The notes under the pieces: generated by a model
Databases searched by the model: none
Told to the model about the DNA's origin: nothing
The model's input: only the letters and a program-made list of their open reading frames with translations
Shown: piece after piece, positions 13,880 to 54,809 of the stretch
Layout of the letters: each line of letters starts with the position of its first letter
Numbering within the stretch: the first letter of the stretch is position 1
Position numbers and translations under genes: made by a program
Assembly: GCF_902713615.1 (NCBI RefSeq)
Contig: NC_052172.1
Span: forward strand, 12,876,185-12,940,184
Direction of reading: 5' to 3'
DNA from: Scyliorhinus canicula
Lineage: Eukaryota
DNA length: 64,000 bases

Positions 13880-14431
13880 CTATTTGAGTTCTTTGATCTT
13901 CTCCTCCACCGAGGCGCGGCTGTCGTCCAGGACCTCGGCCACCTTCTTGCCCAGCTTGTAGAACTGGAAGGTGGGGATGTGGATGATGTCGCAGGCTTCG
14001 GCCGTGTCCTCCGAGTCGTCCACGTTCACCTCGTAGAACTGGACCATGGCGTTGAGCTGGGCCAGCTCCCGCATGATGGGCTTCAGCAGCTGGCACGTCT
14101 CGCACCAGGTGCCCGAGAAGAAGATGACCACCAGCCGCTCGCCCGCCTCCTTGATGAACTTGTCGAACTGGGTCTTGCTGTTGATGGTTTTGAGCGGGAC
14201 GCCCTCGGAGGCCTTGGCCGCCGGCGGGCCCGCCTTGTCCCGCGTCGGCCGCCCCTTGTCCAGCGGCCCGGCCGCCGCCGCCGGCGCCCCCACGCGCGAG
14301 GGCCCTCCGCCCACCTCGCCGGGCGAGTGGGGCGCCCGGTTCTGCGAGGCGCCCGCCCTCTCGGCGGCCGGCGGCGGCGCCTTGCCCTGCGCCTTCTTGG
14401 GCTTGCCCAGCGTGCTGCCCGCGCCCGCCAT
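13880..14431 (-). CDS. Thioredoxin-like protein A (183 aa): ~78-aa Ala/Gly/Pro/Lys-rich N-terminal extension plus Trx domain, active site WCETC
   Basis: ORF aligns to TXN (INSKTQFDKFIKEAGERLVVIFFSGTWCETC...VQFYEVNVDD...HIPTFQFYKLGKKV). ATG at 14431 in strong Kozak context (agcaccATGG); uninterrupted frame, high GC3; AATAAA on the minus strand at 13405-13410. Confidence 0.88.
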   Translation of the reverse strand: MAGAGSTLGKPKKAQGKAPPPAAERAGASQNRAPHSPGEVGGGPSRVGAPAAAAGPLDKGRPTRDKAGPPAAKASEGVPLKTINSKTQFDKFIKEAGERLVVIFFSGTWCETCQLLKPIMRELAQLNAMVQFYEVNVDDSEDTAEACDIIHIPTFQFYKLGKKVAEVLDDSRASVEEKIKELK

Positions 14432-14439
14432 GGTGCTCT

Positions 14440-14900
14440 GCCAGGCGCGCGCCGCCCCGCCCGCGACCCTCGTTGTGACGTCACCCGCCCCCCAGCGTCC
14501 CATGCCGCGACCTCGCGCCATTGGCCCCCTGTCAAGAGGGCCCCGCCCCCCTCCGACCCGCACCCGCCAATCGGCGTCGAGCTACTGGGCCGCCTCGTGC
14601 CGCATTCAAATTCAGACGAAAGGGCGTCACCGATTCCGTGATTGGGGCTGTCGATTACCCAATCAATGCTGAAGGGGCGGTGACGGACAGGCGGTTGACC
14701 TATCACAACGTGTGTGTGTGGAGGCGGCTTCGTGTTGAAAAGCGCGGGACGTCTGCCGGGAGCGTGCGCAGGTGGGCCGGCTCTCCGGCAAGAGAACGGA
14801 AGTGACGTCAGCAACACGCACCGCCCACCCCCGATTGGACGGCCCCGCCTCTGTGTCGTCACCAAGGACGCCTTGGTGACCGTATCCGCGCGACGGGAGA
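14440..14900 (-). promoter_or_regulatory. CpG-rich promoter of Trx-like A: CREs, CCAAT boxes, GC boxes, ETS-CRE composite
   Basis: TGACGTCA at 14476-14483 and 14803-14810 (the second within CGGAAGTGACGTCA); ATTGG at 14520 and further CCAAT/ATTGG sites; several CCCGCC. Confidence 0.7.
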
Positions 14901-15194
14901 TTGGCAGCTCCACTGCCGAGGGGATCAGGAGCGTCAATGAGCAAAGACACTGGAGGGAGGGTGAGGTCACCCAGGATGGGCTAACACGGGACATATGCAA
15001 TTTAGTGAAGAGTGGGTGTAAAGTGATACAGTTTGGGAGAACAAAATTCCAATTTTTAAAAGGTGCTGGAATTAAAAATAACCGGAGATCCAGAGGCAAT
15101 CTCCAGGATAGCAGGCTTTAAAAAAAAAATAATTATTCTACTTGGAATAAATTTAACTTAAAGAGTCTTTTAACTTTAAGTCATAGAATTTACA

Positions 15195-16076
15195 TAGAAG
15201 GCAATGGAGGCCAAATCACTGAGTGATCAATAAGGGGATTAAGGGTAATGGGGAGAAGGCAGGAGAATCATAGAATTATCATAGAATTTACAATGCAGAA
15301 GGAGGCCATTCGGCCCATCGAGTCTGCACCTGCTCTTGGAAAGAGCACCCTACCCAAGGTCAACACCTCCACCCTATCCCCATAACCCAGTAACCCCACC
15401 CAACACTAAGGGCAATTTTGGACACTAAGGGGAATTTATCATGGCCAATCCGCCTAACTTGTACATAGAACATAGAACATAGAACAGTACAGCACAGAAC
15501 AGGCCCTTCGGCCCTCAATGTTGTGCCGAGCCATGATCACCCTACTCAAACCCACGTATCCACCCTATACCCGTAACCCAACAACCCCCCCCCCCCCCTT
15601 AACCTTACTTATTATTAGGACACTACGGGCAATTTAGCATAGCCAATCCACCTAACCCGCACATCTTTGGACTGTGGGAGGAAACCGGAGCACCCGGAGG
15701 AAACCCACGCACACAGGGGGAGGACGTGCAGACTCCACACAGACAGTGAGCCAGCCGGGAATCGAACCTGGGACCCTGGAGCTGTGAAGCATTTATGCTA
15801 ACCACCATGCTACCCTGCTGCCCAACATCTTTGGACTGTGGGAGGAAACCAGAGCACCCGGAGGAAACCCACGCAGACACGGGGAGGATGTGCAGACTCC
15901 GCACAGACCCGAGTCGGAATCGAACCTGGGACCCTGGAGCTGTGAAGCAATTGTGCTATCCACAATGCTACCATGCTGCCCTTGGGGATGCGAAACATAT
16001 CATCCATGATTGAAGGGCAGAGCAGACTGGATGGGTCGAGTGGCTTAATTATGCTCCTATGTCTTATGGTCTTATA
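15195..16076. mobile_element. Triple nest: CR1 3' tail > type-B SINE (about 15268-15981, -) > type-A SINE (about 15467-15824, -)
   Basis: The outer SINE breaks at ...ctaacttgtacat and resumes acatctttggactg; the CR1 tail resumes at about 15982. Confidence 0.85.
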
Positions 16077-16728
16077 GTGCAATGCAGTGGAACCAGTAAG
16101 AAATAGTGACATTGTATGTGGTTGACAAGTTACTTCATCTCCTCTACAGTCATAGTTTGTTAAGTAAAAACAATATTATACTTTTTTCTAAACTTGTTTA
16201 AATTACTAACAAAATGGGAATATATATAAAACAAAGTTTATGTGTCAATGTAAGGATTTGCATGTTCAACTGAAATGGGTTTGATTTTCAGCAATAAAAA
16301 GTCATAAACTTGGAAAAATCAGTTATTGGGAATAAAGTTTCAAAGAAACAAAAAGAATGCCGGTCACAACCGGCCTTTAAATATGAACGATGTAGTCTTT
16401 CCGCCAGGGGCAGCGGCAGAGAGAAGGTTGTGCGCCCAGCACTAGACTGACACCATGCACCCTGTGCACCCGTGTACGTGCCAGGCCCATGTGCAAAATC
16501 GTGGAGGTAAGGTTCCTCCATTTTGTAGCTGCCAGCTGGCAAGCAACAGGACTGCGTGAAGAACTGAAGATGGATCATTTTGTAAAAAGGAAGAGGGGGG
16601 GCCTGAGACACATACAGGCAAGGATCATACAACTGAATCTACTGGAGAGAGCTTCACAAGAGAGTCTACGGCAGATAAGCAGTGATGCTGTGAGCTGTAT
16701 ACAGAGCCCCAGGGCCTCTGGTGAACAA

Positions 16729-17371
16729 TGTTATGGGCCAGGGTTTAAAAACTCCAAAGAGTATTGTGGAGTCCACCTGACCTATAACATTTTATGTTGA
16801 ATTTGGCTGGGATGAGCATAAGAGCCTGCCTTTCAGGTGTTATTCAACAGACTTCTTAGGCGCATTTAAATCAAAAAACAAGCTTTATTCTAAGAATTTA
16901 GTTAACATTTGAATAACACAGAGCAAAAATGTTTATCAATTCTGAACATAAAAACTCCACACAGCTGCAGTAATCTATGTATAACCCTTAATGAATTCCC
17001 CCTTAACTGTTCCAATTCAATAACAAAATCCTAGTAAAACCAGAAACCCCTTTTCAAAGGTGTGGCCCAGCACACAGCATTCTCATTGGTATAAAATATG
17101 TTATTGATCCTCTGTTCCCCTTTTCAAACAGCAGGGTTGAATTCCTTCCAGAAAGCAATTGTCTCTTTTAAGTTACCAAGTCGTCTGGAACAGCTTTTAA
17201 AAATGAAGATAGAGAAAAACACTTCTTTCAAACTTGTGCAGTTCAAAACCAGTCCAAACTCAAAGCGAAAATAAAACCCACAGAGCCAAAGCCCAGCTCC
17301 ACCCAAACAATGACATCATTGAAGCCATGTGATAAGACAAAAACATTTCTTTAAGGGATACTCTCGTGACA
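16729..17371. mobile_element. Solo LTR with 4-bp TSD
   Basis: Starts tgttatg, ends cgtgaca; acaa on both flanks (16725-16728, 17372-17375); splits the transposase remnant. Confidence 0.75.
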
Positions 17372-17473
17372 ACAACCCATTAAGAAGAAACTGAAATCAG
17401 GAACAAAGCAGTATAAAGATGATTTCTGGAGCTATGGCTTTACTGTCAATTATTCTTTTGTCTACCATGTATG

Positions 17474-17802
17474 GGGCAGCACGGTGGTTAGCATAAATGC
17501 TTCACAGCTCCAGGGTCCCAGGTTCGATTCCCGGCTGGGTCACTGTCTGTGTGGAGTCTGCACGTCCTCCCCGTGTGTGCGTGGGTTTCCTCCGGGTGCT
17601 CCGGTTTCCTCCCACAGTCCAAAGATGTGCAGGTTAGGTGGATTGGGCACGCTAAATTGCCCGTAGTGTCCTAAATAAGTAAGGTTAAGGGGGGGTTGTT
17701 GGGTTACGGGTATAGGGTGGATACGTGGGTTTGAGTAGGGTGATCATTGCTCGGCACAACATCGAGGGCCGAAGGGCCTGTTCTGTGCTGTACTGTTCTA
17801 TG
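17474..17802 (+). mobile_element. HE1/V-SINE-type SINE (type A)
   Basis: tRNA-like head (ggttcgattcc), V-domain, tail ggccgaagggcctgttctgtgctgtactgttctatg. Confidence 0.9.
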
Positions 17803-18259
17803 TACGTACTGTGTATGTTCCCTTGGCCGCAGAAAAATACTTTTCACTGTACTTCGGTACATGTGACAATAAATATCAATCAATTGTGCCGGTGCCAATC
17901 ACAATGCAAAGCTCATATGTGTTATATGCAGGGTAGTACCGGCAAATAAAAGTTTAAAACCCTCAAATCTTCAAAAGCATTCAAAAGCATGGTGAGTTTG
18001 AGGACAAACCTCTTGATTTTTTTTCAAAGAATGCAGCAAGAATTTAAATCATCAGCTGAAGGCCTCAGGAGAAATGTAATATTGAAGTGAGATTGTGAGG
18101 ACCAAGCAGGCTCACCTGTTACATAAAGGTAAGTCGTAATGGTGTGTCGCTAAAGTGGGCCCGCATGGGTCACTAATGTTGGCTAGTGTGGGTCCCCAAG
18201 GGTCACCGGTTGGGAAAAATGGGTCCTGGGCAAAAAAAGATTGACAAACACTGACCTAA

Positions 18260-18710
18260 GATGTGTGACTGCCTCCTGACACACTGCATCCTGATGTGTT
18301 GCAATGCCTGAAGCTCAGACTCCAGCTCATTAAGACCTAAGATATAGGAGCAGAATTAGGCCTCTTGGCCCATCGAGTCTGCTCCGCCATTCAATCATGG
18401 CTGATATGTTTCTCATCCCCATTCTCCTGCCTTCTCCCCATAACCCCTGATCCCCTTATTAATCAAGAATTAATCTCAGTCTTAAAGACACTTGATGTGG
18501 CCTCCACAGCCTTCTGCAGCAAAGAGTTCCACAGATTCACCACCCGCTGGCTGAAGAAATTCCTCCTCATCTCTTTAGTCTGAGATTATATCCTCTGGCT
18601 CTAGCTCTGAGCCGAAGTTCCTCGAGCAACAGACGTGGTCGCTAGGAAGCGGGTCGATCAGCTCCCACATGTTCCAGCTACAATACATCGCCTGGCCCTG
18701 CATCCCTATC
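18260..18710 (-). mobile_element. CR1 fragments (3' tail piece within an ORF1-like remnant)
   Basis: STAFCSKEFHRFTTRWLKKFLLIS is the antisense reading of the CR1 3' end. Confidence 0.6.
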
Positions 18711-18905
18711 TTATTTCATTAGAATTTATTTAATTTAGAACTTCAATTTGATTTTACTTATACCACTAATCTTTACTTCCTGCAATTTCTGTTCCCTACC
18801 TAGCTTTCACTTCCATAGTCTGAAAGGTGGAAGAGAGACTCCCCTAGCAGTCACTTACCTGCGATATCGCAAAGACATGTTCTCTCTCTGTACTGTAACG
18901 CTATT

Positions 18906-19083
18906 GAAATGAAAATGAAATGAAAATCGCTGATTGTCACGAGTAGGCTTCAATGAAGCTACTGTGGAAAGCCCCTAGTCGCCACATTCCGGCGCCTGTC
19001 CGGGGAGGCTGGTACGGGAATCGAACCGTGCTGCTGACCTGCTTTAAAAGCCAGTGATTTAGCTCAGTGAGCTAAACCAGCCT
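18906..19083 (-). mobile_element. Type-E short SINE
   Basis: Matches 2757-2925. Confidence 0.8.
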
Positions 19084-19379
19084 CGTTGCAACTTATGCCC
19101 CAGCTGTTCTGCCTTAGCCTGCACCTACCCTCACTGGCCTTGACTCCCAGCACTCAGAGCCTCTCTCCACGCTGTTACTCCTCTGAAGTTGCTCTCTCTC
19201 CTCCCCCTGCTGTTTTAACTTGCCGGATCTGCCTCTCTCCACGTATCTCTATTTCTTTTTCCAATTTGCAGGTTAAATCTGTTGCCGATTTCTCTACTAT
19301 GCTCTTCACTCTGGCTCTGTTCCAATTAGGGCAATCAGTGAATTTGCCTTCTTTCTATATTGTCTATGTCCGAATGCTT

Positions 19380-20196
19380 AGCGTCGCCAGGTATCGAATG
19401 ATACCACCACAAGTTTCAACTGGCTATCGATCAAAAAGCCAAACACCAGTTAGTTAGTTCAAGGTCAAGGGTACTTTATTCACAGGCAATCAATCATGCA
19501 ACATAAACACTACTAGTTAACTACCCCTATTACGAAGACAACCTGTACTTAACTTCGGGCACCCGGTTTAGGTCAGGAAACAGTGGGCGCTGTTCAATTC
19601 TGGATCTCTTGGGTTTGAAGGGATAACTGCTGCTCAGCTGGGCTTATCCGTCTGGTAGTGGGCGTTGAACTCGGACTTGCTTCTGGTGTTGCTGCGATTG
19701 GTGATGACCGTGGTTGGGGTACCAAGGCCAAAAGAGAGCGAACATATGGCAAACTCTTCCTTTATACTCGGGGGGGGGGGGGGGGGGGGTGGGTGGGGGC
19801 TTTCGCGCTCTTTTGGGCGGTCCTTTGATTTGGGCCTTACTAATTGGGTGATCCCTGATCACTCCGTTTCGATTCCTTAGCCAATAAGTGGGTGGGGATC
19901 TGGATGGCTGGGCGTGTCTCAAGCGGTCATTGACCCTGTTGTTTGCGTTTCCCTTGGACAGGGAGTGGCGCCGAAATGTCTGGGACTATCCCGGTTGCTT
20001 GAGGACCAGTCCTTTGTGTTGAAGGAGATGGGCCATCACCTGCTAATGGGATGGGGTTTCGATACCATCTGGACTTTGCTGACAAATATGCATTTCAGGC
20101 TCAGAACCTTTCTGACTCTTGGCTTGTCCATTTTACCCATCAGTCTTTGCGAGTTGCTCTGTGCTTAGTTGGAAATGGCCATCCCAGATGGCTACA
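19380..20196 (-). mobile_element. LTR-like element
   Basis: On the minus strand it begins TGTAGCC, has CCAAT, TATA (GTATAAAG about 19765), AATAAA (about 19478), and is followed by a PBS-like tggcgac. Confidence 0.45.
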
Positions 20197-20452
20197 GCTC
20201 CACCACAGTATTTTATGTGGCAAAAACATTTAATGCGATCCAAAAACCCGGCACAAAGGAAGTTCTAGTTTGCCCGCATTCTTTTTGTGATTGTTTTATC
20301 AATTCCTTGATGAGGGATATAATATAATATAATCTTTATTATTGTCACAAGTACAAGGATATAGGGGAAGAAAATAATAGAGGGCTAAAATGATAGATGA
20401 GGAAAAATAAGAGGAGACTAGAATGGAACATAAATTGGTCGGGCCGAATGAT

Positions 20453-20715
20453 ATCACAGTGCCACGGACCTGGGTTCGATTCTGACCTCGGGTGACTGGA
20501 GTTTGCACGTTCTCCCTGTGTCTGCGTGGGTTTCCTCCGGATGCTCCAGTTTCCTCCCACAGTCCAAAGATATGCAGGTTAGGTGGATTGGCCATGCTAA
20601 GCTACCCCTTAGTATCCAAAGATGTGAGGTTGTGCAGTGCTCCTTCGAAGAGTTAGTGCAGACTTGATGGGCCAAGTGGCCTCCTTCTGCAGTGTAGGGA
20701 TTCTATGATTCTATG
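20453..20715 (+). mobile_element. V-SINE-type SINE
   Basis: V-domain and (ttctatga)n tail. Confidence 0.75.
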
Positions 20716-21276
20716 TATGTAAGGTGGCAACTGTTAAGTGAGCAAACTATCAGAATCCAACCTTATTGTACCTCGACAGGATATCATTTGTCTCCACAGC
20801 CCAGTCATTTAATAACTTCACATACTAGGATAAGGAACCAAAGGGGAAATAACAGCAATAGTTTGCCACTAGTTAGTGCCCGTGACATAGCAAAACATCC
20901 CACTGTGATTCACAGGAGACCCATCAAACAAAATTGGTCACTAAGACACAAATTGGGCTCAAAGAGTGAAAGCAAGGTGAAAAGTTGTAAGGGGGGAATT
21001 TCTGAGCTTAAGAGTCTTGACAGCTGAAGACATAGCCGCCAACAGGGAGCAGTTAAAATCAGGGCTGTTCCAGAGGCCAGGATAGAGGTATGTCGATATC
21101 TCGAAGTGTTGTAGGGCTGTAGAAGGCTGTTGAGCATGAGGGGTCAGTCAATGGAGGAAATCACATAGAGCAGCAGCTTTCTGAATTCACAGAATTGTTG
21201 CCCATCGTGTCTGAATAAGTAATTCCCTTTGTGCCAGTCTCACTCCTCCCTGTAACCCTGTATATTCTTCCTTTTA

Positions 21277-21822
21277 TAATAATATAATAATCGCTTATTG
21301 TCACAAGTAGGCTTCAATGAAGTTACTGTGAAAAGCCCCTAGTCGCCACATTCTGGCGCCTGTTCTGGGAGGCCAGTACGGGAATTGAACCCGCGCTGCT
21401 GGCCTTGTTGAATCATAGAATCATAGAATTTACAGTGCAGAAGGAGGCCATTCAGCCCATCGAGTCTGCACCGGCTCTTGGAAAGAGCACCCTACCCAAG
21501 GTCAACAACTCCACCCTATCCCCATAACCCTGTAACCCCACCCAACACTAAGGGCAATTTTGGACTCTAAGGGCAATTTATCACGGCCAATCCACCTAAC
21601 CTGCAGATCTTTGGACTGTGGGAGGAAACTGGAGCACCCGGAGGAAACCCACGCACACACGGGGAGGATGTGCAGACTCCGCACAGACAGTGACCCAAGC
21701 CGGAATCGAACCTGGGACCCTGGAGCTGTGAAGCGATTGTGCTAACCACCATGCTACCCTGCTGCCCTGGCTTGTTCTGCATTACAAGCCAGCTGTTTAG
21801 CCCACTGTGCTAAACCAGCCCC
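21277..21822 (-). mobile_element. Type-E SINE interrupted by a full type-B SINE (about 21410-21767)
   Basis: tggc(c)ttgtt duplicated at 21400-21409 and 21768-21776. Confidence 0.85.
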
Positions 21823-21839
21823 TGACTTTTCAGTTTACC

Positions 21840-24738: not shown

Positions 24739-25059
24739 TTACTTCAGTCGCATTAGCAGATGGTCCAACTTGTCCCTCTTGGTGCCCGTGAACTCTGCAA
24801 CTTTTGCTTGGCAGCTGTAGAAGTGGAAGGTGGGCATGCAGGTGATGCCCGCCGCCCGGGACAGATCCTCCGACTCATCCACGTCCACCTCCACGAAGAT
24901 CACGTCGCGGAACTGGTCGGACCTCATGTGGAAGAAGGGCTTGATGCTGGAGCAATTGTTGCACCATCGGGCCCCGAAGAAGACGACGATGAGCGTCTCC
25001 TCCTCCTCCTGCAGCAACGTCTCGAACTGCTTGCGTGTCTTGATGTGCCTCAGGACCAT
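24739..25059 (-). CDS. Thioredoxin-like protein B (106 aa), active site WCNNC
   Basis: MVLRHIKTRKQF...LIVVFFGARWCNNC..IKPFFH..VIFVEVDVD..GITCMPTFHF..KVAEFTG is colinear with vertebrate TXN. Kozak ggcagtATGG; ATTAAA (minus) at 24702-24707. Confidence 0.9.
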   Translation of the reverse strand: MVLRHIKTRKQFETLLQEEEETLIVVFFGARWCNNCSSIKPFFHMRSDQFRDVIFVEVDVDESEDLSRAAGITCMPTFHFYSCQAKVAEFTGTKRDKLDHLLMRLK

Positions 25060-32609: not shown

Positions 32610-33830
32610 GTAAGAGAGGAGAGAGTGTAAGAGAGAGATGGGAGGGTGTGATCGAGTGTGTGAATGGGAGAGGGAAGAATGTGTGAGTGAGTGTGTACAT
32701 GAGGGAAGAGTGTGTGTGTGTGTGGTAGGCTATATTAGGGGTATCACGGTACCTAGGTGGGATGCACCTTATACTGTAGTATGAATGGTAGAACCTGCCT
32801 GCTGGTTCCGCCCAGCAGGCGGAGCATAAGTGTCTGTGTTTCACCCACAGCAGTCATTCTGTACCAGAGCTGCCGGGGTAACTACTTGTTCATTAAAGCC
32901 TTCAATTGGACTCCAATCTCGCTTCAGTAGTGATTGATTGTGCATCAGTGTGTATGAGGGGGGAGTGGGTGAGTGAGTGTCAGAGGGGAGTATGAGTGAG
33001 GGAAGGAGTGTGAGAGGGAGTGTGAGTGGGTGAGGGAGAAGTGAAGAGTGGGTGTGAGAGGGAGGAGTGTGAGTGGGTGTGAGACGGAGGAGTGTGAGTG
33101 GGTGTGAGGGAAGAGTGTATGTGTGTGTGTGAGAGAGGGGAGTGTGTGAATGAGTGCCAGAGGGGAGTATGAGTGAGGGGAGGAGTGTGAGAGGGTGAGG
33201 GAGGAGAGTGAGTGGGTGTGAGAGGGAGGAGTGTGAGGCAGGAGGGTGAGTGGGTGTGAGACGGAGGAGTGTCAGTGGGAGGAGTGGGAGGGAGGAGTGT
33301 GAGAGGGAGGAGTGTGAGTGGGTGTGAGGGAAGAGTGTATGTGTGTGTGTGAGAGAGGGGAGTGTGCGAATGAGTGCCAGAGGGGAGTATGAGTGAGGGA
33401 GGAGTGTGAGAGGGTGAGGGAGGAGAGTGAGTGGGTGTGAGGGAGGAGTGTTTTGGGAGGAGAGTGAGTGGGTGTGAAAGGGAGGAGTGTGAGTGGGTGT
33501 GAGGGAGGAGTGTGAGAGGGAGAAGTGAGAGGGAGTGTGAGTGGGTGTGAGGGAGGAGAGTGTGGGTGTGAGAGAGGGGTGTGAGGGTGGAGTGTGAGTA
33601 GGTGTGAGAGGGAGGAGTGTGAGAGGGAGGAGTGTGAGAGGGAGGTGAGAGAGAGAAGTGTGAGTGGGTGTGAGGGAGGAGTGTGAGTAGGTGTGAGAGG
33701 GAGGAGTGTGAGTGAGTGAGAGGGGGACTGTGAGTGAGTGTGTGTGGGGGGGGGAGTGCAAGTCACACAGTATGTGACTAAGTGTATGTGAATGAGTGTG
33801 TGCATGTAGAGAGTCTGTGTGTGTCTGACT
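32610..33830. repeat. Cryptic (GAGTGT/GAGG) low-complexity satellite with internal higher-order duplication
   Basis: Recurrent gagggaggagtgtgagtgggtgtga; the block near 33090-33230 is repeated near 33310-33440. Confidence 0.9.
32721..32947 (+). mobile_element. Small solo LTR inserted in the GT-rich repeat
   Basis: tgtggtag...attaaag...gattgtgcatca; the 3' end resembles the other LTR ends here (gcatca). Confidence 0.6.
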
Positions 33831-34416
33831 CACTAACAGTTTCAGGGTACTCCTTCGCCTTCACCCCCACCCAGTGGGTGAGAGTTAGTGAGTGAGCACC
33901 CGAGACCAGGAGTGAGCCACACACACCTTCTCACACCCAATGGTCATCTCTATTTACTCATTTGAAAAAAAACCATCATCAGTTTATTGCTTTGACATTG
34001 TTTTGATCAGCAAGTTGTTCTTTATTTTTGAAATTCACATTTAATGTGCCAAACCGTATCTTTCCAAAATTTGCTCATTAACCTTTGATTGAGGCAAATA
34101 ATTGAAATTTGCCTCCCTGTTTACACACACCCTGTGAAAAGGACAGATACGCTGGAATTACAACATCCTGAGATGGTGATTGATGCTCCATTAATACAAG
34201 ACCTTCCTTTTACCACTAGTAACAGAATAACTCGGCAATTTGTAAATCATTTCCACTGTAATCATCCCTACTGAGAGAACGACTACAGGAACAGTTAGTC
34301 TAACTTGACGAGAGAGATGAGCAATGGGTCACTGGGCGGAGTGCTCCGGTCATCGTGATTCACTTTTTCAGTTGCAGCGCACCCCCCGCCCAGGGGTTTC
34401 CCGGCGGTGTGGGGTG

Positions 34417-42641: not shown

Positions 42642-42959
42642 TCACTGCAGCTCGTCCAGGAGGCGCTCCAGCCTGTCCCTCTTGGTGCCCGAGAACTCGC
42701 CCATCTTGGCGGAGCGCTTGAAGAAGTGGAAGGTTGGCATGCAGGTGATGCCGGCCGACCGGGCCATGGGCTCGGCGTCATCCACGTCCACCTCCACGAA
42801 GACGACGTTGGCCATCTGCTCGGAGAGGTTGTAGAAGTGCGGCCGGATCAGGCGGCAGTTGCTGCACCACTCGGCCGAGTACATGACCACCACCAGCTGC
42901 TCGGTCTGGCTCAGCAGGGCGGTCAGCTGCTTGGCGTCCTCCACGTGTCTCACCACCAT
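42642..42959 (-). CDS. Thioredoxin-like protein C (105 aa), active site WCSNC
   Basis: LVVVMYSAEWCSNC..IRPHF..VVFVEVDVDD..GITCMPTFHFFK..KMGEFSG matches the TXN fold. Kozak ggcagcATGG; AATAAA (minus) at 42549-42554. Confidence 0.9.
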   Translation of the reverse strand: MVVRHVEDAKQLTALLSQTEQLVVVMYSAEWCSNCRLIRPHFYNLSEQMANVVFVEVDVDDAEPMARSAGITCMPTFHFFKRSAKMGEFSGTKRDRLERLLDELQ

Positions 42960-43835: not shown

Positions 43836-43998
43836 CAAAACAAATGTGCACATATTGGTGAGGGGAGTTAAGCAAGTAAGGATTAAGTGAAGGTTTTTCA
43901 AAGTGCGGGTCACTGGCGGGCGTTGCTGAAGGCTTAGCTACCAATGTTGCCTCAAATAAATTCAGGAATTCTCAAGAGGCCAGAATTGGAAGAGTGCA

Positions 43999-46999: not shown

Positions 47000-49725
47000 T
47001 GATGCGACCATCAATTCACTCAAGACACGAGTGGAAGTAAACTGTGGCTTTAATCGACTTACAACTGAGCCTGCCTGCGACCAGAAGAACTAAGGACAGG
47101 CTCACAAGACCGCAGCACTTTATACTTCCGGTATTGGGAGGAGCCATGGGCAGAGCCAAGATTGGAGCCCTGTACATGCTCCCCATCACCCCCTATGGGC
47201 AGAGCCACGCAACGGCTCACAGATGGAGCCCACAGGGACACAGTGATATACAGTGTGAATTATACGCATTATACATTCACCTCATTCACCCCCTGTAAAA
47301 AAAATCAAGTCCGGCGGGGGTGACGGGTCTACAGATTGAGTTGGTCCGGTGTCCGAATCGTCCGCTGGGATCTGCGGAGCACCTGGTTTGCAGCCGCTTC
47401 AGATGGCTGGGTGCTGATGTCCGGTGTGAATCTGAGGGTGGACTCCGGGGGTGGTTCGTTCAGAGCTTCGTTCCTGACCGGTGCGATGGGCGAAAGGGGG
47501 CGCAGGAAACCTGTTGGCGCAGGGCGTGGGGGGCCTGGTGGGGTGTAGTGTGAGGGGTATCTCAGCTGTGGTGGTGGTAGTGGTGGTGGATCCTGCAGGC
47601 GCCAGGTCCCAGAGGGAAACGGTGTCCTGCCGGCCATCAGGGTGTTCGATAAAGGCACAGTGGTGGTTTGAATGTAGCAGTAGTACCCTCGCTACCAGCG
47701 GGTCAGTTTTATGTGTCCGGACGTGCTTCCGGAGGAGAACCGGGCCCGGTGTCCTCAACCAAGATGGAAGCAAGGCCCCCGTGGTAGTGCCCCTAGGGAA
47801 AACAAATAATCGCTCGTCAGGAGTCTGATTAGTGGCCATACACAGGAGGGACCTAATTGCATGGAGCGCGTCTGGGAGGACCTCCTGCCAGTGGGAGGTC
47901 GGGAGATTGCTGGACCGGAGGGTCAGTAGGACAGTCTTCCAGACCGTCGCGTTCTCCCTCTCCACTTGCCCGTTCCCCCTGGGGTTATAGCTGGTAGTCC
48001 TGCTCGAGGCAATGCCCTTGTCGAGCAGGTACTGACGCAGCTCGTCACTCATGAAGGACGAACCCCTGTCACTGTGGACGTAGCTGGGGAAACCAAACAG
48101 GGTGAAGACACTGTGCAGGGCTCTGATGACTGTATGGGAGGTCATATCGGGGCACGGGATGGCAAACGGGAAGTGCAAGATTTCATGTATAGTGTTAAGA
48201 AAATAGATATTACGGTTGGTCGAGGGGAGGGGCCCTTTGAACTCAATACTTAGTCGTTCAAAGGGCCGGGATGCCTTTACCAGGTGGGCCTTGTCTGGTC
48301 TATAGAAGTGCGGTTTGCACTCCGCACAGATCGGGCAATCCCTGGTGACGGCTTTGACCTCCTCGGTGGAGAAAGGCAGATTTCGGGCTTTGATGTAATG
48401 GGCGAGCTGGGTGACCCCCGGGTGGCAGAGGTCATTGTGGAGAGCCTGTAATCGGTCGTCTTGCGCGCTGGCGCATGTGCCGCGGGACAGGGCATCTGGG
48501 GGCTCGTTGAGCTTCCCCGGTCGATATATGATGTCATAATTATAGGCGGAGAGTTCGATCCTCCACCTCAAGATTTTATCGCTTTTTATTTTGCCCCGTT
48601 GCGAGTTGTCGAACATGAAGGCAACCGATCTCTGGTCAGTGATGAGGGTGAACCTCCTACCTGTGAGGTAGTGTCTCCAGTGCCGTATGGCTTCCACAAT
48701 GGCTTGAGCTTCTTTTTCGACTGAGGAGTGTCGAACTTCTGAAGCGGAGAGGGTCTGGGAGAAGAACGCTACTGGCCTACCTGCCTGGTTCAGAGTGGCA
48801 GCGAGAGCGACCTCTGAGGCGTCGCTCTCCACCTGAAAGGGGACAAATTCATCCACCGCCTGCATGGCGGCTTTGGCGATGTCCTCCTTGATGCAGTTGA
48901 AGGCCCGGCGGGCCTCAGCTGACAGTGGGAATAGTGTGGTCTTAAATAGTGGGCAGGCTTTGTCCGCGTACTGGGGGACCCACTGGGCGTAATAGGAGAA
49001 GAATCCAAGGCACCTCTTGAGGGCCCTGGAACAGTGAGGGAGAGGGAGTTGTAAGAGGGGGCGCATACGGTCCGGGTCAGGCCCCAGGACCCCGTTTTCC
49101 ACAACATAGCCGAGGATGGCTAGCCTGGTTGTGCGGAAAACGCATTTCTCCTTGTTGTATGTGAGGTTGAGTTTTTTGGGCGGTTTGGAGAAATCGGTGG
49201 AGGTTGGCGTCGTGGTCCTGCTGGTCATGGCCGCAGATGGTGACGTTATCCAAGTACAGAAACGTGGCCCGCAGCCCGTACTGGTCCACCATTCGGTCCA
49301 TTGCTCGTTGGAACACCGAGACCACAGTCGTGACGCCAAAGGGGACCCGGAGGAAATGGAAGAGGCGGCCATCTGCCTCGAATGCTGTGTAGTGGCGGTC
49401 CTCCGGGCGGATTGGGAGCTGGTGGTAAGCAGACTTCAGATCCACCGTGGAGAAGATGGAGTAAAGAAGATGCGGTACTGGGCAATCTGGTTGACCATGT
49501 CTGCAATTCTGGGGAGGGGGTACGCATCGAGGTGTGTGAACTGGTTAATGGTTTGGCTGTAATCAACCACCATCCGGAACTTGCTCTCCAGGGGCTATTA
49601 CTGGCCTCTATGACTCCCTCACGTAGGAGCCGCTGGACTTCGGGTCTAATAAATACCCTGTCCTGCAGGCTGTACCGCCTGCTGCGAGTGGCTACGGGTT
49701 TGCAGTTAGCGGTGAGGTTGGCGAA
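47000..49725 (-). mobile_element. 5'-truncated Ty3/Gypsy LTR retrotransposon (RT-RNase H-integrase plus 3' LTR 47000-47284)
   Basis: DLKSAYHQ, YLDNV, RNase H ESDAS..LITDQ, integrase HHCC (LHNDLCHPG..CPIC), HSDRG, GQVER; polypurine tract agggggtgaa before the LTR; frameshifted. Confidence 0.93.
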
Positions 49726-49751
49726 GTCGAACCTGTTGGACTTTAACCTGG

Positions 49752-49964
49752 TGTTGTAAGACTTCTTACTGTGCACACCTGTATTAGGTAGGACCTGTAC
49801 TACAGGTTCGCCGGTCGCCCCTGCCGGCTGGCTCCGCCCAGTAGGAGGAGCATGTCCTCTATTCAACAGCCATTTCGCCAGCTGCTGTGGGAGGCTACAC
49901 ATCTGACTGCAATAAAGCCTCAGTTGTATCCAACCTTAGTCTTTGTACAATTGATCGTGCATCA
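49752..49964 (+). mobile_element. Unrelated small LTR at the truncation point of the Gypsy copy
   Basis: tgttgtaag...aataaag...gatcgtgcatca. Confidence 0.55.
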
Positions 49965-50089
49965 CAGATATGTTATATTGTATGTATTTCGAGTATCCAA
50001 TTTATTTTTTCCAATTAAGGAGCAATTTAGCGTGGCCAATCCACCCACCTTGCACATCTTTTGGGTTGAGGGGGCGGAACCCACACAAA

Positions 50090-51272
50090 CACGGGGGTTC
50101 TCCGTTTCTGAGACTAAGTGTTGACGTCAACGCAGAATTCGTAGACTTTCACAGCAGCCAATCTGGTGCTGCACCTGGACCGATTCAGTTACTGTTAAGG
50201 GGCAAAAACCAGTGCCGCGTGGAACACAATTGATTCCAAGGAAAAAACGGTGCGGGATTCGCCGGGTCCATGATTGACACTCAGGAAGCTGAGAAGCTGC
50301 AGCCGCATATACACACTTCACTCCCCACACACACTCATCCCAGCCAACAAGATGGCACTGGTTGTGCTGGGGCACATTCATACAGCTGATGGGTCGGCTG
50401 GGGCCAGAGGGTACCCAGGGGAGTGACATAGAACATAGAACAGTACAGCACAGAACAGGCCCTTCGGCCCTCGATGTTGTGCCGAGCAATGATCACCCTA
50501 CTCAAAGCCACGTATCCACCCGATACCCGTAACCCAACAACTCCCCCCCTTAACCTTACTTTTTAGGACACTACGGGCAATTTAGCATGGCCAATCCACC
50601 TAACCCGCACATCTTTGGACTGTGGGAGGAAACCGGAGCACCCGGAGGAAACCCACGCACACACGGGGAGGACGTGCAGACTCCACACAGACAGTGACCC
50701 AGCCGGGAATCGAACCTGGGACCCTGGAGCTGTGAAGCATTTATGCTAACCACCATGCTACCTGCTGACGTGGAGGGGACACCCATATGACCCGCGGCAC
50801 TAAGTTCACAGCTGCGGCAATGCTGTTCCGTGTCTGTCCACCCCGACCCCATAGCTCACCTTCTGGCCAACCCCCGCTATTCCCCCCCCCCCCGGGTCCT
50901 GGCAGAAGCTCCCCAGGGAATGGCACAACTGTCAGTACACTATGGCAATATTGGCTTTCCATACCCCCTCTCTCTCCCCATCAGCAGCCACCATGTTGGT
51001 TTCAAGATTTCTAAAAGCACATGTGAACCGCACCGTTGGGAACTCGGCCCATCGGAGCAGAATCGGGAAGGCCCCAGAGAATACTGGGTTGGGCCCACTA
51101 ATGATATGCCAAAGGAGTTTACTGTGCGTGCATGCCGGAACGCATTAGTACCACTGTCGAGGTGATGGAGAATCGCGATTTGGTGTCAAATCGGCGCCCA
51201 CCATGATTTTGCCGTAGGAGCTGATTCTCCGCCCAATCGTGTTTTGGCATCGGCCAACAGAGAATCCCGCCC
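50090..51272. mobile_element. GC-rich TIR element interrupted by a type-A SINE (about 50427-50764, -)
   Basis: Right end gagaatcccgccc; full SINE inside. Confidence 0.65.
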
Positions 51273-51807
51273 ATTGTGTTTGCTCTTCGGAAGGTGATGC
51301 AGTTACCAGGGGTTGAAGCAGTCAGCTGTTGAGTTTCAGTTTGCGGTTTTAGTTCAGACCAGCAACTTTCCTCAAAGCAACGGTTAAAATGATTTTTCCT
51401 GTGAACACAGGCAAGAATCTGAAGCTGGTTCCTGAAGGGTTACTCTGAGAGAGTCTTTATTCCAAAATATCTCTTTACAGCAACTATCCCTGGGTTGTAT
51501 TTAAAAATGGATTTTGACCTGAGATGGGTTTTGCTAGAATGGAGAGAAAAGGTAACAGTTTGGATTTTGTGTTTCATGTTATAGTTAAGCATTGCTGAAG
51601 ATCATGGAATTGATCATAGAATTTACAGTGCAGAAGAAGGCCATTCGACCCATCAAGTCTGCACTGGCTCTTGGAAAGAGCACCCCACCCAAGGTCCACA
51701 CCTCCACCGTATCCCCATAACCCAGTAACCCCACCCAACACTGTCCTAAATTACTGAACTGGTAATTATGAGGTATTTTTCTTTGTGATATTAAAGTTAG
51801 TAAAACT

Positions 51808-52856
51808 CCCACAGGGGAGATGAGGAGCATGTACAGGGCTCCACCGTGGCTCCGCCCATAACTCCACCCACAACCGGAAGTATAAAGTGCTGCGGTCTTG
51901 TGAGTGTACCCTCAGTTCTTCTGGTTGCAGGCAGGCTCAGTTGTAAATTGATTAAAGCCACAGTTTACTTCAACTCGTGTCTCTGAGTGAATTGATGGTC
52001 GCAGGAATCTGGAATCTCCTGACCTCCCACTGGCAGGAGGTCCTCCCCAACGCGCTCCATGCAATTAGGTCCCTCCTGTGTATGGCCACTAATCAGACTC
52101 CTCACGAGCGATTATTTGTTTTCCCTAGGGGCACTACCACGGGGGCCTCGCTTCCATCCTGGTTGAGGACACCAGGCCCTGTCCTCCTTCGGAAGCACGT
52201 CCGGACACATAAAACAGACCCGCTGGTAGAGAGGGTCCTACTCCTGCATTCAAACCCCCACTACGGGTTTATCGAGCACCCTGACGGCCAGCAGGACACC
52301 GTTTCCCTCCGGGACCTGGCACCTGCAGGATCTACCACTACTGCCGAGGTACCCCTCACACCACACCCGATCCCCCACGCCCTGCGTCCCTGCACCTACA
52401 GGTATCCTGCGCCCCCTTTCACCCGTCACACCGGTCAGGAACAAAGCTCTGGAAGAACCATCCCCGGATTCACATCGAACATCTGCACACACCCATCCGA
52501 AGCGGCTGCATCTCCAGTGCTCCGCCGGTCCCAGTGAACGATTCGAGCACCGGACCAACTAAACCTATCGACCCGTCACCCCCGCCGGACTTGATTTTTT
52601 TAACACGGGGTGAATGTATAATATAAATTCACACTGTATATCACTGTGTCCCCCATCTGTGAGCCGTTGCGCGGCTCTGCCCACAGGGGGAGATGAGGAG
52701 CATGTACAGGGCTCCGCCCACAACCGGAAGTATAAAGTGCTGCGGTCTTGTGAGTCTGCCCTCGGTTCTTCTGGTCGAAGGCAGGCTCAGTTGTAAGCTG
52801 ATTAAAGCCACAGTTTACTTCAACTCGTGTCTCTGAGTGAATTGATGGTCGCATCA
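51808..52856 (+). mobile_element. Second, internally deleted copy of the same Gypsy family (partial LTR, integrase C-terminus, LTR about 52615-52856), inside another LTR-like sequence
   Basis: WQEVLPNALHAIRSLLCMATNQTP nearly identical to the 47399-49372 ORF; LTR ends gatggtcgcatca. Confidence 0.9.
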
Positions 52857-53369
52857 CTGTGTTAATAATAAAGTTTGTTTTAATACACTGTATCCCTGTG
52901 TGTTAGTGTGTGTGTGCGCGAGTTGAATCAATCCTGGAGCGAAGTATCCTTTCCTCACAGTTTTACAAACAAAATAAAATATTGGGGTTTCTGTCAATAT
53001 TGTCCTAGCAACTGCTGGGGTCTAGTCCGGGATCATAAAAATAGGCTGGGGTTGTCTGGCTGTTGACATGCTGGCGGGATCTTCTGGTCCCAACGAAAGC
53101 GCACCCTCGCCCCGGTTTCCGGTCCCCGTCTCTTAGAAATAGTGGCATGCGATCTTTTACACCTAAGTGGGCAGACAGGGCCTTGATTTTACACCTCATC
53201 CGAAAGTCAGCCTATCCAGAGTGTCAGATTGTGTACCGAAAACCTGGAGTGCATATCTGTCACTGGACATCAATGTGCAACCCACTGAGTCAAGGCCGAG
53301 GTCTGCCATAACAATTGGGTTGCCAACTGTGATTAAATGCTTTTTCACATGGCTTTCCTCCCACCCTTT

Positions 53370-53687
53370 GAACATTGAACATACAGTGCAGAAGGAGGCC
53401 ATTTGGCCCATCGAGTCTGCACCGACCCATTTAAGCCCTCACTTCCACCCTATGCCCGTAACCCAATAACCCCTCCCAACATTTTTCGGACACTAGGGGC
53501 AATTTAGCATGGCCAATCCGCCTAACCTGCACGTCTTTGGACTGTGGGAAGACACTGAAGCACCCGGAGGCAACCCACGCAGACACAGGGAGAACGTGCA
53601 GACTCCGCAGACAGTGACCCAGCAGGGAATCGAACCTGGGACCCTGGCACTGTGTGAAGCCACAGTGCTAACCACGATGCTACCGTG
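53370..53687 (-). mobile_element. V-SINE-type SINE
   Basis: Full head, V-domain and tail. Confidence 0.85.
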
Positions 53688-53949
53688 CACGCTCCAGTCA
53701 TTTGTCAGCCAACACATCTGTCCTAGTGATCCATGGCCTTCCGACACAATTGGAAAGCAAAAAAACTCATTACCCAATTGGATGATGCTTGACTGTCAGT
53801 GAAACAGCCTTTCCCCCCTTCCCCATTTTTCATATTCTTATACTGTATCAGGTAAAGAGCTCAAAGAAAATGTCAGAAAACATGTTTCTTCAGGGTTGCA
53901 CAGAGCAGTGCCCTAGGGATTGATTTAAAACTTTTAGGGATTGGCCATC

Positions 53950-54157
53950 AATCCCAGCGGATTGTAATCGCCCTTCAACCCCTGTGGATCGTAATCGCCC
54001 TTCAACCCCTGTGGATTGTAATCGCCCTTCAACCCCTGTGGATTGTAATTGTCCGTCAATCCCTATGGATTGTAATCGTCCGTCAATCCCTGTGGATTGT
54101 CATCGTCCGTCAATCCCTGTGGATTGGGATCGCCCTTCAATCCCGGGGGATTGGGAT
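53950..54157. repeat. 27-bp minisatellite (ggattgtaatcgcccttcaacccctgt), about 7-8 copies
   Basis: Direct read; translates as repeated DCNRPSTPV. Confidence 0.92.
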
Positions 54158-54207
54158 CTCGGCAGAGGGAGGGCAACGTGCGATGACAGTGGACACCAAA
54201 GTGGAGC

Positions 54208-54415
54208 GGGGCAGTATGTTGTCACAGTGGTTAGCACTGCTGCCTCACGGCACCAAGGTCCCAGGTTCGATCCCAGTCGGTCACTGTCCGTGTGGACTTT
54301 GCACATTCTCCCAGTGTTTGCGTGGGTTTCGCCCCCACAACCCAAAGATGTGCAGGGTAGGTGGATTGGCCGCACTAAATTGCCCCTTAATTGGGGGTAA
54401 AATGTATTTGGAAAA
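54208..54415 (+). mobile_element. Type-C SINE ending about 25 bp from the Trx-like D stop codon
   Basis: tRNA head, cgcccccacaacccaaagatg, aaattgccccttaattgg. Confidence 0.8.
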
Positions 54416-54440
54416 AAGCCAAGCGGGAGCCAGGAGCCGT

Positions 54441-54809
54441 CTAGGTCTTGCCGGGGTTTAATTTCGGCGGGCACTGGGAGCCGTCCCCCTGCAGCTTCTG
54501 GATCATTCGCTCCAGGAGGCAGCGGTTGGGCCCCTTGAACTGGAAGATCTTGACGCCGCTCTTGAAGAACTGGAAGGTGGGGAACCACTCGACGCGGCAG
54601 CGCTGCACCACGTCCCTGGCCACGCCGATGTCCACCTCATAGAAGGCAACGTCCGGGTAGCCCTCGGCGAACTGGTCAAAGTTGAGCTGTATCATCTGGC
54701 AGAACTCGCACCAGTTGGCGGAGTACAGCACCACCACCAGCTGCTGCTCGCCCGCCTCCAGCGCCGCGTCCAGCTCCGCACAGTTCTTAATGTTGCCGAT
54801 CACACCCAT
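54441..54809 (-). CDS. Thioredoxin-like protein D (122 aa), active site WCEFC, short C-terminal extension
   Basis: ELDAALEAGEQQLVVVLYSANWCEFC..VAFYEVDI..FPTFQFFKSGVKIFQFKGPN matches TXN. Kozak gggcaATGG; intact frame. Confidence 0.87.
   Translation of the reverse strand: MGVIGNIKNCAELDAALEAGEQQLVVVLYSANWCEFCQMIQLNFDQFAEGYPDVAFYEVDIGVARDVVQRCRVEWFPTFQFFKSGVKIFQFKGPNRCLLERMIQKLQGDGSQCPPKLNPGKT

Follow-up and report, generated by a model that had tools for sequence, protein, structure and literature searches.

The plant proteins TrxL2 (WCRKC) and ACHT have classical thioredoxin (Trx) folds with a dipeptide other than Gly-Pro between the active-site cysteines; they have a less negative potential, accept no electrons from the normal reductase and serve as protein oxidation factors (PMC6882916). 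TrxL2 lies at −258/−245 mV, compared with −321/−335 mV for typical thioredoxins; its reductase cannot reduce it, and it oxidises its targets (PMC6882916). The lineage-restricted cyanobacterial TrxC (WCGLC), which has lost only the active-site proline and keeps the other key Trx residues, shows no activity in assays with insulin or FBPase, and restoring the proline (L32P) does not bring activity back (PMC6262485), so changes elsewhere in TrxC matter too. Studies cited in the same paper have His, Thr or Ser in place of Pro34/Pro31 making thioredoxins more oxidising (PMC6262485). NrdH, Cp9-type thioredoxins and BC3987 are without Asp26 and yet reduce their substrates (PMC3720550). Classical thioredoxins receive electrons from NADPH through thioredoxin reductase, reduce insulin and have an E0' near −270 mV or lower.

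The window, by which we mean the whole 64,000-nucleotide stretch analysed from Scyliorhinus canicula, holds on its minus strand exactly four intact single-exon Trx open reading frames (ORFs), A–D, identified by a six-frame scan and the ORF list (Table 1). The whole ~105-residue Trx domain lies uninterrupted inside each complete ORF, and tblastn found exactly these four copies and no degenerate fifth Trx copy in the window. All four are members of the thioredoxin family, with scores of 61.5–77.1 bits against Pfam PF00085 (cut-off 23.5; E 1e-17 to 1e-22) and with WCxxC and the cis-Pro loop present. The stretch from 13880 to 54809 runs from the first base of the gene A stop codon to the A of the gene D ATG, and the interval holding the genes is rich in transposons.

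Table 1. Features of the window, in order of position
Feature	Position	Strand	Details
BLVRB (biliverdin IX-beta / flavin reductase), last coding exon	563..718	+	PDB 1HDO, E 3.9e-13, residues 156-200 of 206
Gene A	13883..14431	-	183 aa; stop codon 13880-13882; WCETC 14093-14107; PF00085 E 2e-17
Palindromic CRE TGACGTCA	14476..14483	.	45 bp upstream of the conserved ATG of gene A
CRE	14803		
Gene B	24742..25059	-	106 aa; stop codon 24739-24741; WCNNC 24952-24966
CRE	25525		Upstream of gene B
Gene C	42645..42959	-	105 aa; stop codon 42642-42644; WCSNC 42855-42869
CRE	43042		83 bp upstream of gene C
Gene D	54444..54809	-	122 aa; stop codon 54441-54443; WCEFC 54699-54713
112-bp tandem repeat, 3.3 copies	54803..55185	.	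Directly upstream of the gene D ATG; Tandem Repeats Finder score 471
SERTA-domain gene, single ORF	61105..61929	+	Pfam PF06031, E 4e-15; upstream flank of the cluster

In fold and length A–D resemble TXN. The fold was checked on AF2 models of D and A, and C was judged by its full-length sequence match to human TXN. The model of D (pLDDT 86.7) superposes on human TXN (1ERV) with a TM score of 0.97 and an rmsd of 0.7 Å, leaving a disordered C-terminal tail at residues 110–122, and the modelled Trx domain of A (pLDDT 73–91) has its elements in the order of the thioredoxin fold (β-α-β-α-β-α-β-β-α). Gene A places this domain behind ~77 N-terminal residues that are disordered, basic and rich in A/G/P/K (pLDDT <50 at residues 2–10 and 15–77) and whose start, MAGAGS, is kept in nine elasmobranch orthologs. 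B is near-neutral in charge. C is the nearest of the four to vertebrate TXN, with human TXN its best solved relative (E 1e-28) and 51–53% identity to representatives named as mammalian TXN.

The catalytic frame of TXN is kept. As the sequence-only reading had noted, the tryptophan, both cysteines and the cis-Pro survive in all four genes: W31, C32, C35 and P75-T76-F77 are invariant in 34 of 34 aligned sequences, and F54 and V57 are retained. What sets A–D apart from canonical thioredoxins is the absence of both the Gly33-Pro34 dipeptide and the buried Asp26; they share with the atypical thioredoxins a non-canonical dipeptide inside a Trx that is otherwise classical. Alignment bears out the reported loss of Asp26, the aligned residue being F in A, F in B, M in C and L in D; across the ortholog set it is F, F, M/F or L and never acidic (35/35). 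Pro34 is likewise missing from 35 of 35 sequences, replaced by the dipeptides ET (A), xN (B and C) and EF (D). Among the best 150 cluster representatives from 1.8 billion proteins, a non-Gly-Pro dipeptide combined with the lack of Asp26 occurs only in chondrichthyan proteins.

Orthologs show which parts of these sites are held fixed. E33/T34 is present in all 12 gene A sequences, including that of a chimaera, and EF with L26 in the 7 gene D orthologs from sharks and rays. Asn34 is constant in B and C together (16/16; B 7/7, C 9/9), and only in these two does the first variable residue, X1, drift, through G/S/N/T/A/H overall (N/S/G in B, S/T/N/G/A/H in C), such that WCNNC turns up in C of Pristis, Amblyraja and Mobula and WCSNC in B of Narcine. 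Because B and C differ solely at this freely drifting position, the conserved site classes are three: CETC (A), CxNC (B and C) and CEFC (D). The four different motifs of the sequence-only reading are thus real in the window but do not amount to four classes; conservation of the dipeptide in orthologs holds for ET, EF and Asn34 and fails for X1 of B and C; and the case for four graded potentials, as proposed, is weaker, B and C sharing one class. As a side point, threonine, found at position 34 of gene A, is among the published proline substitutions.

The substrate-groove loops 73/74 and 91/92, and Pro40 in D, are also remodelled relative to TXN, in a family-specific and fixed manner. Alongside F26 and WCETC, gene A has fixed H73, I74 and D91-D92; B (F26) and C (M26) share the groove set x33-N34, C73-M74 and G91-T92; in D, L26 is accompanied by L40 instead of Pro40, by W73-F74 and by G91-P92. 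Position 73 is invariant within its family, Cys in B and C and His in A, and it could serve a different purpose: the active-site cysteines together with Cys73 or His73 might ligate [2Fe-2S] or Zn, the rigid Pro34 being lost, and A–D would then be sensors or cluster carriers instead of oxidoreductases. In glutaredoxins, absence of the active-site proline permits cluster binding. Human and mouse Trx1 have been reported with [2Fe-2S] held by an active-site cysteine and a vertebrate-specific cysteine outside it (bioRxiv 10.1101/2020.08.04.235721), and the Methods of that study name Cys73. Trp73 and Phe34 of D, however, form a bulky hydrophobic site and an unlikely ligand set, and A–D have no further conserved Cys/His cluster besides the residues named; we regard metal binding as unlikely.

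Several lines of evidence indicate that A–D are maintained. First, orthologs of all four families are present in sharks and rays, and those of A and B also in a chimaera; within the searches made, the family has been found so far in cartilaginous fishes only. Gene B orthologs come from Rhincodon, Chiloscyllium, Hemiscyllium, Stegostoma, Narcine and Callorhinchus, gene C orthologs in sharks and rays are 80–93% identical, and gene D has orthologs in seven sharks and rays. Second, purifying selection acts on each of the four genes: shark-versus-ray dN/dS is 0.17–0.51 and significantly below 1 in every pair (B 0.17 against Narcine, C 0.26–0.39, D 0.43 against Amblyraja), with pN below pS in every pair (Fisher p 0.013 to 3.5e-10). 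Values of 0.4–0.5, seen in some pairs, correspond to moderate constraint only. Free variation of the dipeptides under relaxed selection, the outcome that would have told against the sequence-only reading, is not what the orthologs show, the dipeptides being largely fixed. A look for expression turned up no evidence of it; the one short Logan contig matching Leucoraja A runs collinear with genomic sequence and is no proof of transcription.

These data bear on whether A–D are decaying processed pseudogenes or relaxed copies whose odd motifs are mutational noise. Intronless copies in a transposon-rich interval, with non-canonical catalytic residues, would fit such an origin. But every examined species has intact ORFs, across sharks and rays and, for A and B, in a chimaera as well, the gene order is kept, the window is free of degenerate copies, and dN/dS, the comparison of pN with pS and the conserved sites refute decay, which is scarcely credible. 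Invariance of the dipeptides together with purifying selection instead marks the altered sites as selected features and A–D as working proteins.

In the window the order is SERTA gene, D-C-B-A, BLVRB, with the BLVRB exon convergent with gene A at the downstream flank. This order partly recurs in rays, a skate and a chimaera: C-B-A-BLVRB in Narcine, A-BLVRB in Leucoraja and B-A-BLVRB in Callorhinchus. In Hemiscyllium and Chiloscyllium, D is placed upstream of C at a distance of 7 kb. The BLVRB exon is 86% identical to the neighbouring exon in Leucoraja, and a gene with NAD_binding_10/NmrA domains, as in BLVRB, adjoins A or B in Leucoraja, Narcine and Callorhinchus. In S. torazame, the 90% cluster mate of the SERTA gene bears the name 'SERTA domain-containing protein 2-like'. 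Trees recover A, B and D each as monophyletic (100%) and B with C at 99–100%; support for all four families as one group is weak, at 80–83%. A–D are a tandem single-exon family descended from thioredoxin-1. We rejected A–D as positional orthologs of TXN, as they are single-exon coding sequences flanked by BLVRB and SERTA, whereas TXN of the catfish, with several exons over 3.5 kb, is located elsewhere, between alcohol-dehydrogenase-type and VWA/Sushi/EGF genes, neighbours consistent with PTGR1 and SVEP1.

Public database names for these genes are automatic only ('thioredoxin-like', 'TXNDC2-like'), and NCBI calls several A orthologs 'thioredoxin domain-containing protein 2-like'. Gene A does share with TXNDC2 (SPTRX1) a disordered low-complexity N-terminal extension followed by a C-terminal Trx1-like domain. 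TXNDC2, however, has Pro34 in 4 of 4 sampled sequences, with D26V in the titi model only. We rejected A as a TXNDC2 ortholog: TXNDC2 joins mammalian TXN (99/95) and A forms a separate clade (100/97). The N-terminal extensions of A and TXNDC2 are not alignable, and that of chimaera A is unrelated and acidic. The resemblance is convergent rather than orthologous, and the 'TXNDC2-like' label is misleading for family A.

The sequence-only reading had treated Asp26 as the general acid/base. That residue is indeed lost, but whether it is obligatory in this role is debated, and active Trx-type proteins that lack it are known (PMC3720550); from the loss of Asp26 by itself a loss of reductase function does not follow. 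A–D might then be ordinary thioredoxin reductase (TrxR)-coupled reductases in which the substitutions are tolerated fine-tuning and the paralogs differ mainly in expression by subfunctionalisation, for which the germline thioredoxins of flies and mammals offer an analogy. The intact cysteines, W31 and cis-Pro and the unchanged fold would allow this, as would the drift of the mammalian TXNDC2 site (WCRPC, WCSPC, D26V). We nevertheless hold it to be rather improbable: Pro34 is gone in all four families, with replacements fixed in sharks, rays and, for A and B, a chimaera; the TrxR-facing loops 73/74 and 91/92 are altered; and every Pro34 replacement documented in the literature cited in PMC6262485 raises the potential.

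At the other extreme, A–D could be redox-inert binding or regulatory modules, perhaps retaining clients in a long-lived mixed disulfide in the manner of ERp44 (CRFS). With the proposed general base of Cys35 gone, such a disulfide would last longer, CEFC and W73-F74 of D would form a large aromatic patch, and the long disordered basic tail of A is of a type often used for tethering. Pure trapping or binding would not need Cys35, however, and this resolving cysteine is present in 35 of 35 sequences, which leaves the inert reading very unlikely.

We favour A–D being redox-active, more oxidising, specialised oxidoreductases rather than general reductases, to which we give a probability of roughly 55%. 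A–D would still switch between dithiol and disulfide, with their behaviour shifted by the loss of Pro34, the residue responsible for thioredoxin's low potential, by the loss of the buried carboxylate at position 26 and by remodelling of all three substrate-groove loops. Their potential would be expected to be less negative, their mixed disulfides to resolve more slowly, their coupling to thioredoxin reductase to be poor and each family to have its own clients, and A–D may act as specialised oxidants, isomerases or redox relays. The published Pro34 substitutions and the natural non-Gly-Pro thioredoxins make the earlier proposal of a more oxidising, not ordinary reductase plausible. Plant TrxL2 and ACHT would be the best functional model, by analogy, although they arose independently in plastids and TrxL2 carries a basic RK where A–D have acidic, polar or aromatic ET, xN and EF. 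TrxC offers a second, bacterial, lineage-restricted parallel. The Glu at X1 of A and D could push the potential the opposite way by placing a negative charge beside the nucleophilic thiolate.

The sequences upstream of the genes bear on where such proteins might work. The window contains 6 cyclic AMP response element (CRE) motifs against 0.53 expected, a number reached in none of 100 shuffles, and 4 of the 6 lie within ~500 bp upstream of a Trx gene. Every 112-bp unit of the repeat upstream of D contains TGACGTC, CCAAT and GC-box-like motifs. As a sign of spermatid-specific expression, the proximal CREs are only a hint. A–D could conceivably be a germline toolkit of cartilaginous fishes, oxidising spermatid thioredoxins, under CRE promoters near the start codon, that install or edit the disulfide cross-links locking dogfish sperm chromatin, an idea that we consider distinctly unlikely. 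Their active site would have been retuned from reductase to oxidase, and they would parallel mammalian SPTRX and Drosophila TrxT and Deadhead by independent, convergent evolution. TrxT and Deadhead are germline-specific thioredoxins of Drosophila, and their active sites are canonical, unlike those of A–D. The likeness would be that of a thioredoxin paralog dedicated to gamete chromatin disulfides, Deadhead being described in PMC5238724 and PMC5122968 as reducing protamine disulfides at fertilisation. Dogfish sperm chromatin disperses only with a reducing agent, as does that of man and bull, whereas that of trout requires none (PMC2110730), and arginine-rich protamines would be fitting clients for the acidic domain of A (E33, D91-D92) and its basic tail.

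In animals, cytosolic proteins of the Trx1 type nearly always have both WCGPC and Asp26, and the A–D group stands alone among its 150 nearest representatives in having neither. A four-gene set with three fixed alternative sites, kept in sharks and rays and partly in a chimaera, is a natural experiment on the joint part that dipeptide, buried carboxylate and groove loops play in setting redox potential and partner choice. Should A–D prove to be oxidising, or not coupled to TrxR, animals would have in them a first counterpart of the 'atypical thioredoxin' oxidation branch of plants.

Four single-exon thioredoxin-like genes lie on the minus strand of the window, in the order D-C-B-A between a SERTA-domain gene and BLVRB; we use A–D also as names of their ortholog families. 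All four score far above the Pfam PF00085 cut-off, and human TXN is the top solved relative of C (E 1e-28). A six-frame scan and alignment bore out what the sequence-only reading had reported of the active sites: WCETC, WCNNC, WCSNC and WCEFC (A to D) stand in place of WCGPC, and Asp26 aligns with Phe, Phe, Met and Leu, respectively. Trp31, Cys32, Cys35 and Pro75-Thr76-Phe77 are kept in all four. A tblastn search of the window with the four proteins returned exactly A–D and no decayed fifth copy.

Features of the window and their coordinates
Feature	Position	Strand	Remarks
BLVRB last exon	563-718	opposite to A	downstream of A; PDB 1HDO, E 3.9e-13
268-aa ORF	8445-9248	minus	adjoins LINE ORF; no Pfam match
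LINE-type reverse transcriptase ORF	9178-10440	minus	Pfam RVT_1, E 1e-29; between BLVRB and A
A ORF	13883-14431	minus	183 aa counted from conserved start; full Trx domain, unbroken
A motif WCETC	14093-14107	minus	six-frame scan, Trx context
B ORF	24742-25059	minus	106 aa; full Trx domain, unbroken
B motif WCNNC	24952-24966	minus	six-frame scan, Trx context
GT/GA-rich minisatellite	32948-33742		periods 15-177 bp
C ORF	42645-42959	minus	105 aa; full Trx domain, unbroken
C motif WCSNC	42855-42869	minus	six-frame scan, Trx context
LTR retroelement pol remnant, 657 aa	47402-49372	minus	RT_RNaseH, rve, Integrase_H2C2; between C and D
27-bp tandem repeat	53948-54153		7.6 copies, 89% matches; ~300 bp downstream of D stop
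D ORF	54444-54809	minus	122 aa; full Trx domain, unbroken
D motif WCEFC	54699-54713	minus	six-frame scan, Trx context
SERTA-domain gene	61105-61929		upstream of D

For D, AlphaFold2 gave a model of pLDDT 86.7, disordered only in the tail (residues 110–122), that matches human TXN with a TM score of 0.97 and an rmsd of 0.7 Å; going by this model, the scaffold is intact and what is new lies in the active-site surface. The D tail ends in ...GGKCGPCPD in Mobula (P0017) and ...GGKCGPWPD in Hypanus (P0018); the second CGPC-like motif that this gives Mobula is not conserved in sharks or skates. N-myristoylation of D at its Met-Gly start was dropped, as batoid and Hemiscyllium orthologs miss the consensus. 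For A, the longest ATG-initiated ORF begins at 14521; a start at 14431 is conserved in nine elasmobranch orthologs and a cAMP-response element (CRE, 14476–14483) sits between the two candidate ATGs, so the one at 14521 is probably unused. Counted from 14431, A has an N-terminal extension of about 77 residues with predicted disorder. In elasmobranchs it opens with the conserved motif MAGAGS..GK..K; chimaera A has a different, unrelated acidic extension in that place. A is not an ortholog of TXNDC2: mammalian TXNDC2 groups with mammalian TXN and the N-terminal extensions are non-homologous, leaving convergent architecture alone behind the ‘TXNDC2-like’ label on A orthologs.

The unusual residues are conserved among orthologs. 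The second residue of the dipeptide is invariant within each family; the first is invariant in A and D, and small polar residues interchange there in B and C.

Key sites in ortholog families A–D and in TXN (sequences compared in parentheses; four TXNDC2 sequences served as further controls)
Position	A (12)	B (7)	C (9)	D (7)	TXN (7)
26	F 12/12	F 7/7	M 8, F 1	L 7/7	D 7/7
33	E 12/12	N 5, G 1, S 1	N 3, S 2, T 1, G 1, A 1, H 1	E 7/7	G
34	T 12/12	N 7/7	N 9/9	F 7/7	P
73/74 (fixed per family)	H-I	C-M	C-M	W-F	
91/92 (fixed per family)	D-D	G-T	G-T	G-P	

The NN of window gene B recurs in C of Pristis, Amblyraja and Mobula, and the SN of window gene C in Narcine B; with this swap between B and C orthologs, the conserved site classes number three (CETC, CxNC and CEFC), not four. 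The four different motifs first noted are thus real within the window and reduce across orthologs to fewer, B and C sharing the class CxNC. Conservation of each dipeptide in orthologs, proposed at the same time as a check, was found for ET, EF and Asn34, with residue 33 drifting in B and C alone. Gly33 is retained in Heptranchias C and Callorhinchus B, which makes WCGNC the probable ancestral site of B and C. In the same alignments both remaining substrate-groove loops (73/74 and 91/92) are also altered, in a family-specific and fixed manner. Only D lacks Pro40, at the kink of helix 2 (Leu in 7/7), and it has Asn/Gly-Val/Ala in place of Asp60-Asp61; A carries Asn58, and median domain pI runs from 4.9 (A) to 7.9 (B).

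By the Nei–Gojobori method, window genes compared with batoid orthologs give dN/dS values, resting on shark-versus-batoid pairs only, of 0.21 and 0.51 for A, 0.17 for B, 0.26 and 0.39 for C and 0.43 for D (dS per pair 0.34–0.81), and pN is significantly lower than pS in all pairs (one-sided Fisher p from 0.013 to 3.5e-10). That A–D are pseudogenes or under relaxed selection is excluded, with ORFs intact in all species examined, pN below pS and dipeptides invariant. By these measures the four genes are functional, under the moderate constraint common in specialised paralogs.

The combination is also rare. We ran an exhaustive HMMER search with C over 1.84 billion cluster representatives and inspected the best 150 matches: sites of the VDF..WCGPC type occur nearly throughout, and among these 150 a non-GP dipeptide together with a non-acidic residue 26 is chondrichthyan only. 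Some mammalian TXNDC2 proteins show single deviations (WCRPC, WCSPC or D26V). An atlas search with D returned generic thioredoxin clusters only. Literature searches on shark, Scyliorhinus or retrogene thioredoxins found no paper on A–D, which stand in public annotation under automatic names only; the ‘thioredoxin domain-containing protein’ named without further detail in a paper on the shark skin proteome is not assignable to any of them.

In the tree, support is 100% for the monophyly of each of the families A, B and D and 99–100% for B+C; the joint A–D clade has just 80–83%, and the join of A with D was flagged as long-branch. A chimaera ‘C’ model (WCANC) falls with B. This Callorhinchus model and B (WCGNC; P0008 and P0010) are identical over a C-terminal half of 54 residues, which may reflect gene conversion or a chimeric gene model; the Callorhinchus contig (L006) begins 775 bp upstream of B.

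Scyliorhinus torazame (93–97% identity) and other sharks and rays supply the nearest proteins, as expected of DNA from a catshark-like cartilaginous fish, and each thioredoxin gene is a single ORF in all loci retrieved. A single 102-kb contig of S. torazame carries A, C and D under locus tags 16843, 16845 and 16846; in Hemiscyllium and Chiloscyllium, C is preceded on its own strand, 5–7 kb upstream, by a thioredoxin gene of 122–132 residues. In the electric ray Narcine, the genes C, B and A come in that order ahead of a convergent BLVRB-type NAD-binding gene, the four within 20 kb, the skate Leucoraja has A followed by the same BLVRB-type neighbour, and in the chimaera Callorhinchus B (WCGNC), A (WCETC) and that neighbour share one 9.8-kb contig. 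C and D are 5–12 kb apart on the same strand in sharks; in Amblyraja (L001, L002) some 80 kb of one chromosome separates them and their strands are opposite, which suggests an inversion within the cluster in skates.

The TXN neighbourhood of bony vertebrates is of the PTGR1/SVEP1 type. Catfish TXN is multi-exon and spans 3.5 kb; it has an alcohol-dehydrogenase-type gene on one side and a huge VWA/Sushi/EGF gene on the other, a pair that fits PTGR1 and SVEP1. Orthology of A–D with TXN is ruled out by locus and exon structure, A–D being single ORFs between BLVRB and a SERTA-domain gene. The cluster is best explained as an old intronless TXN copy, probably made by retroposition, that was later duplicated in tandem.

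The intergenic DNA is rich in transposon remains. Fragments related to the LINE reverse transcriptase and its adjoining 268-aa ORF recur at ~30.3–30.9 kb and ~37.1–37.5 kb and in ray and skate loci. A short interspersed repeat is present in at least ten copies (~15.65, 17.6, 20.5, 21.6, 22.5, 27.8, 38.0, 39.0, 50.6 and 53.5 kb); translated pieces of it match the Amblyraja and Leucoraja loci, pointing to an old, elasmobranch-wide SINE-like element. A 330-aa ‘ORF’ (32841–33833) was rejected as a gene, being GT/GA-rich minisatellite with no Pfam match.

What chemistry might these sites support? The invariant Cys pair, Trp31 and cis-Pro lead us to infer that thiol-disulfide chemistry continues, and a reading of A–D as pure binding or trapping modules fits poorly with the invariant resolving Cys35. 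Thioredoxins become more oxidising when their active-site Pro is exchanged (E. coli P34H; S. aureus P31T and P31S), the Pro-to-Thr change of A being exactly one of these mutations, and a natural WCGLC TrxC has no insulin or FBPase activity (PMC6262485). For the plant WCRKC protein TrxL2 the potentials are -258/-245 mV, where typical thioredoxins have -321/-335 mV; its reductase cannot reduce it, and it oxidises its target enzymes (PMC6882916). By analogy with these precedents, we favour A–D as specialised, more oxidising oxidoreductases that would couple poorly to TrxR and act on family-specific clients. Glu33 in A and D may counteract the oxidising shift, and the acid/base role of Asp26 is debated, thioredoxin-type proteins without it being active (PMC3720550). 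The sequence-only interpretation of these genes as unusual redox proteins is thus supported in part: the unusual sites are conserved under selection, and a biochemical consequence would be expected by analogy. A–D may instead be ordinary reductases whose expression is tissue-specific. B and C, which keep Cys73 and have lost Pro34, could plausibly bind metal or an Fe-S cluster, as could A, with His73; for D such binding is unlikely. Human and mouse Trx1 have been reported with a [2Fe-2S] cluster held by one active-site Cys and a Cys outside the site, Cys73 in the methods (bioRxiv 10.1101/2020.08.04.235721).

The DNA upstream of the genes offers regulatory leads. A short Logan contig with Leucoraja A, inspected for signs of transcription, was collinear with the genome, with no splicing or poly(A) tail. 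Palindromic CREs are enriched in the window (6 versus 0.53 expected), lying 45 bp upstream of the A ATG, 83 bp upstream of the C ATG and also upstream of B; a 112-bp tandem repeat containing TGACGTC and CCAAT abuts the D ATG. As a lead, these elements suggest that each copy may have its own compact promoter, and hence that the duplications may have taken regulatory DNA along. Proximal CREs are typical of post-meiotic male germ-cell genes, but not specific to them. Dogfish sperm chromatin, as in man and bull, disperses only with a reducing agent (PMC2110730), and flies have thioredoxins dedicated to the germline (PMC5238724, PMC5122968). Taken together, the CREs, the sperm chromatin and the fly precedent allow the speculation, by analogy, that A–D may form a ‘sperm disulfide toolkit’.
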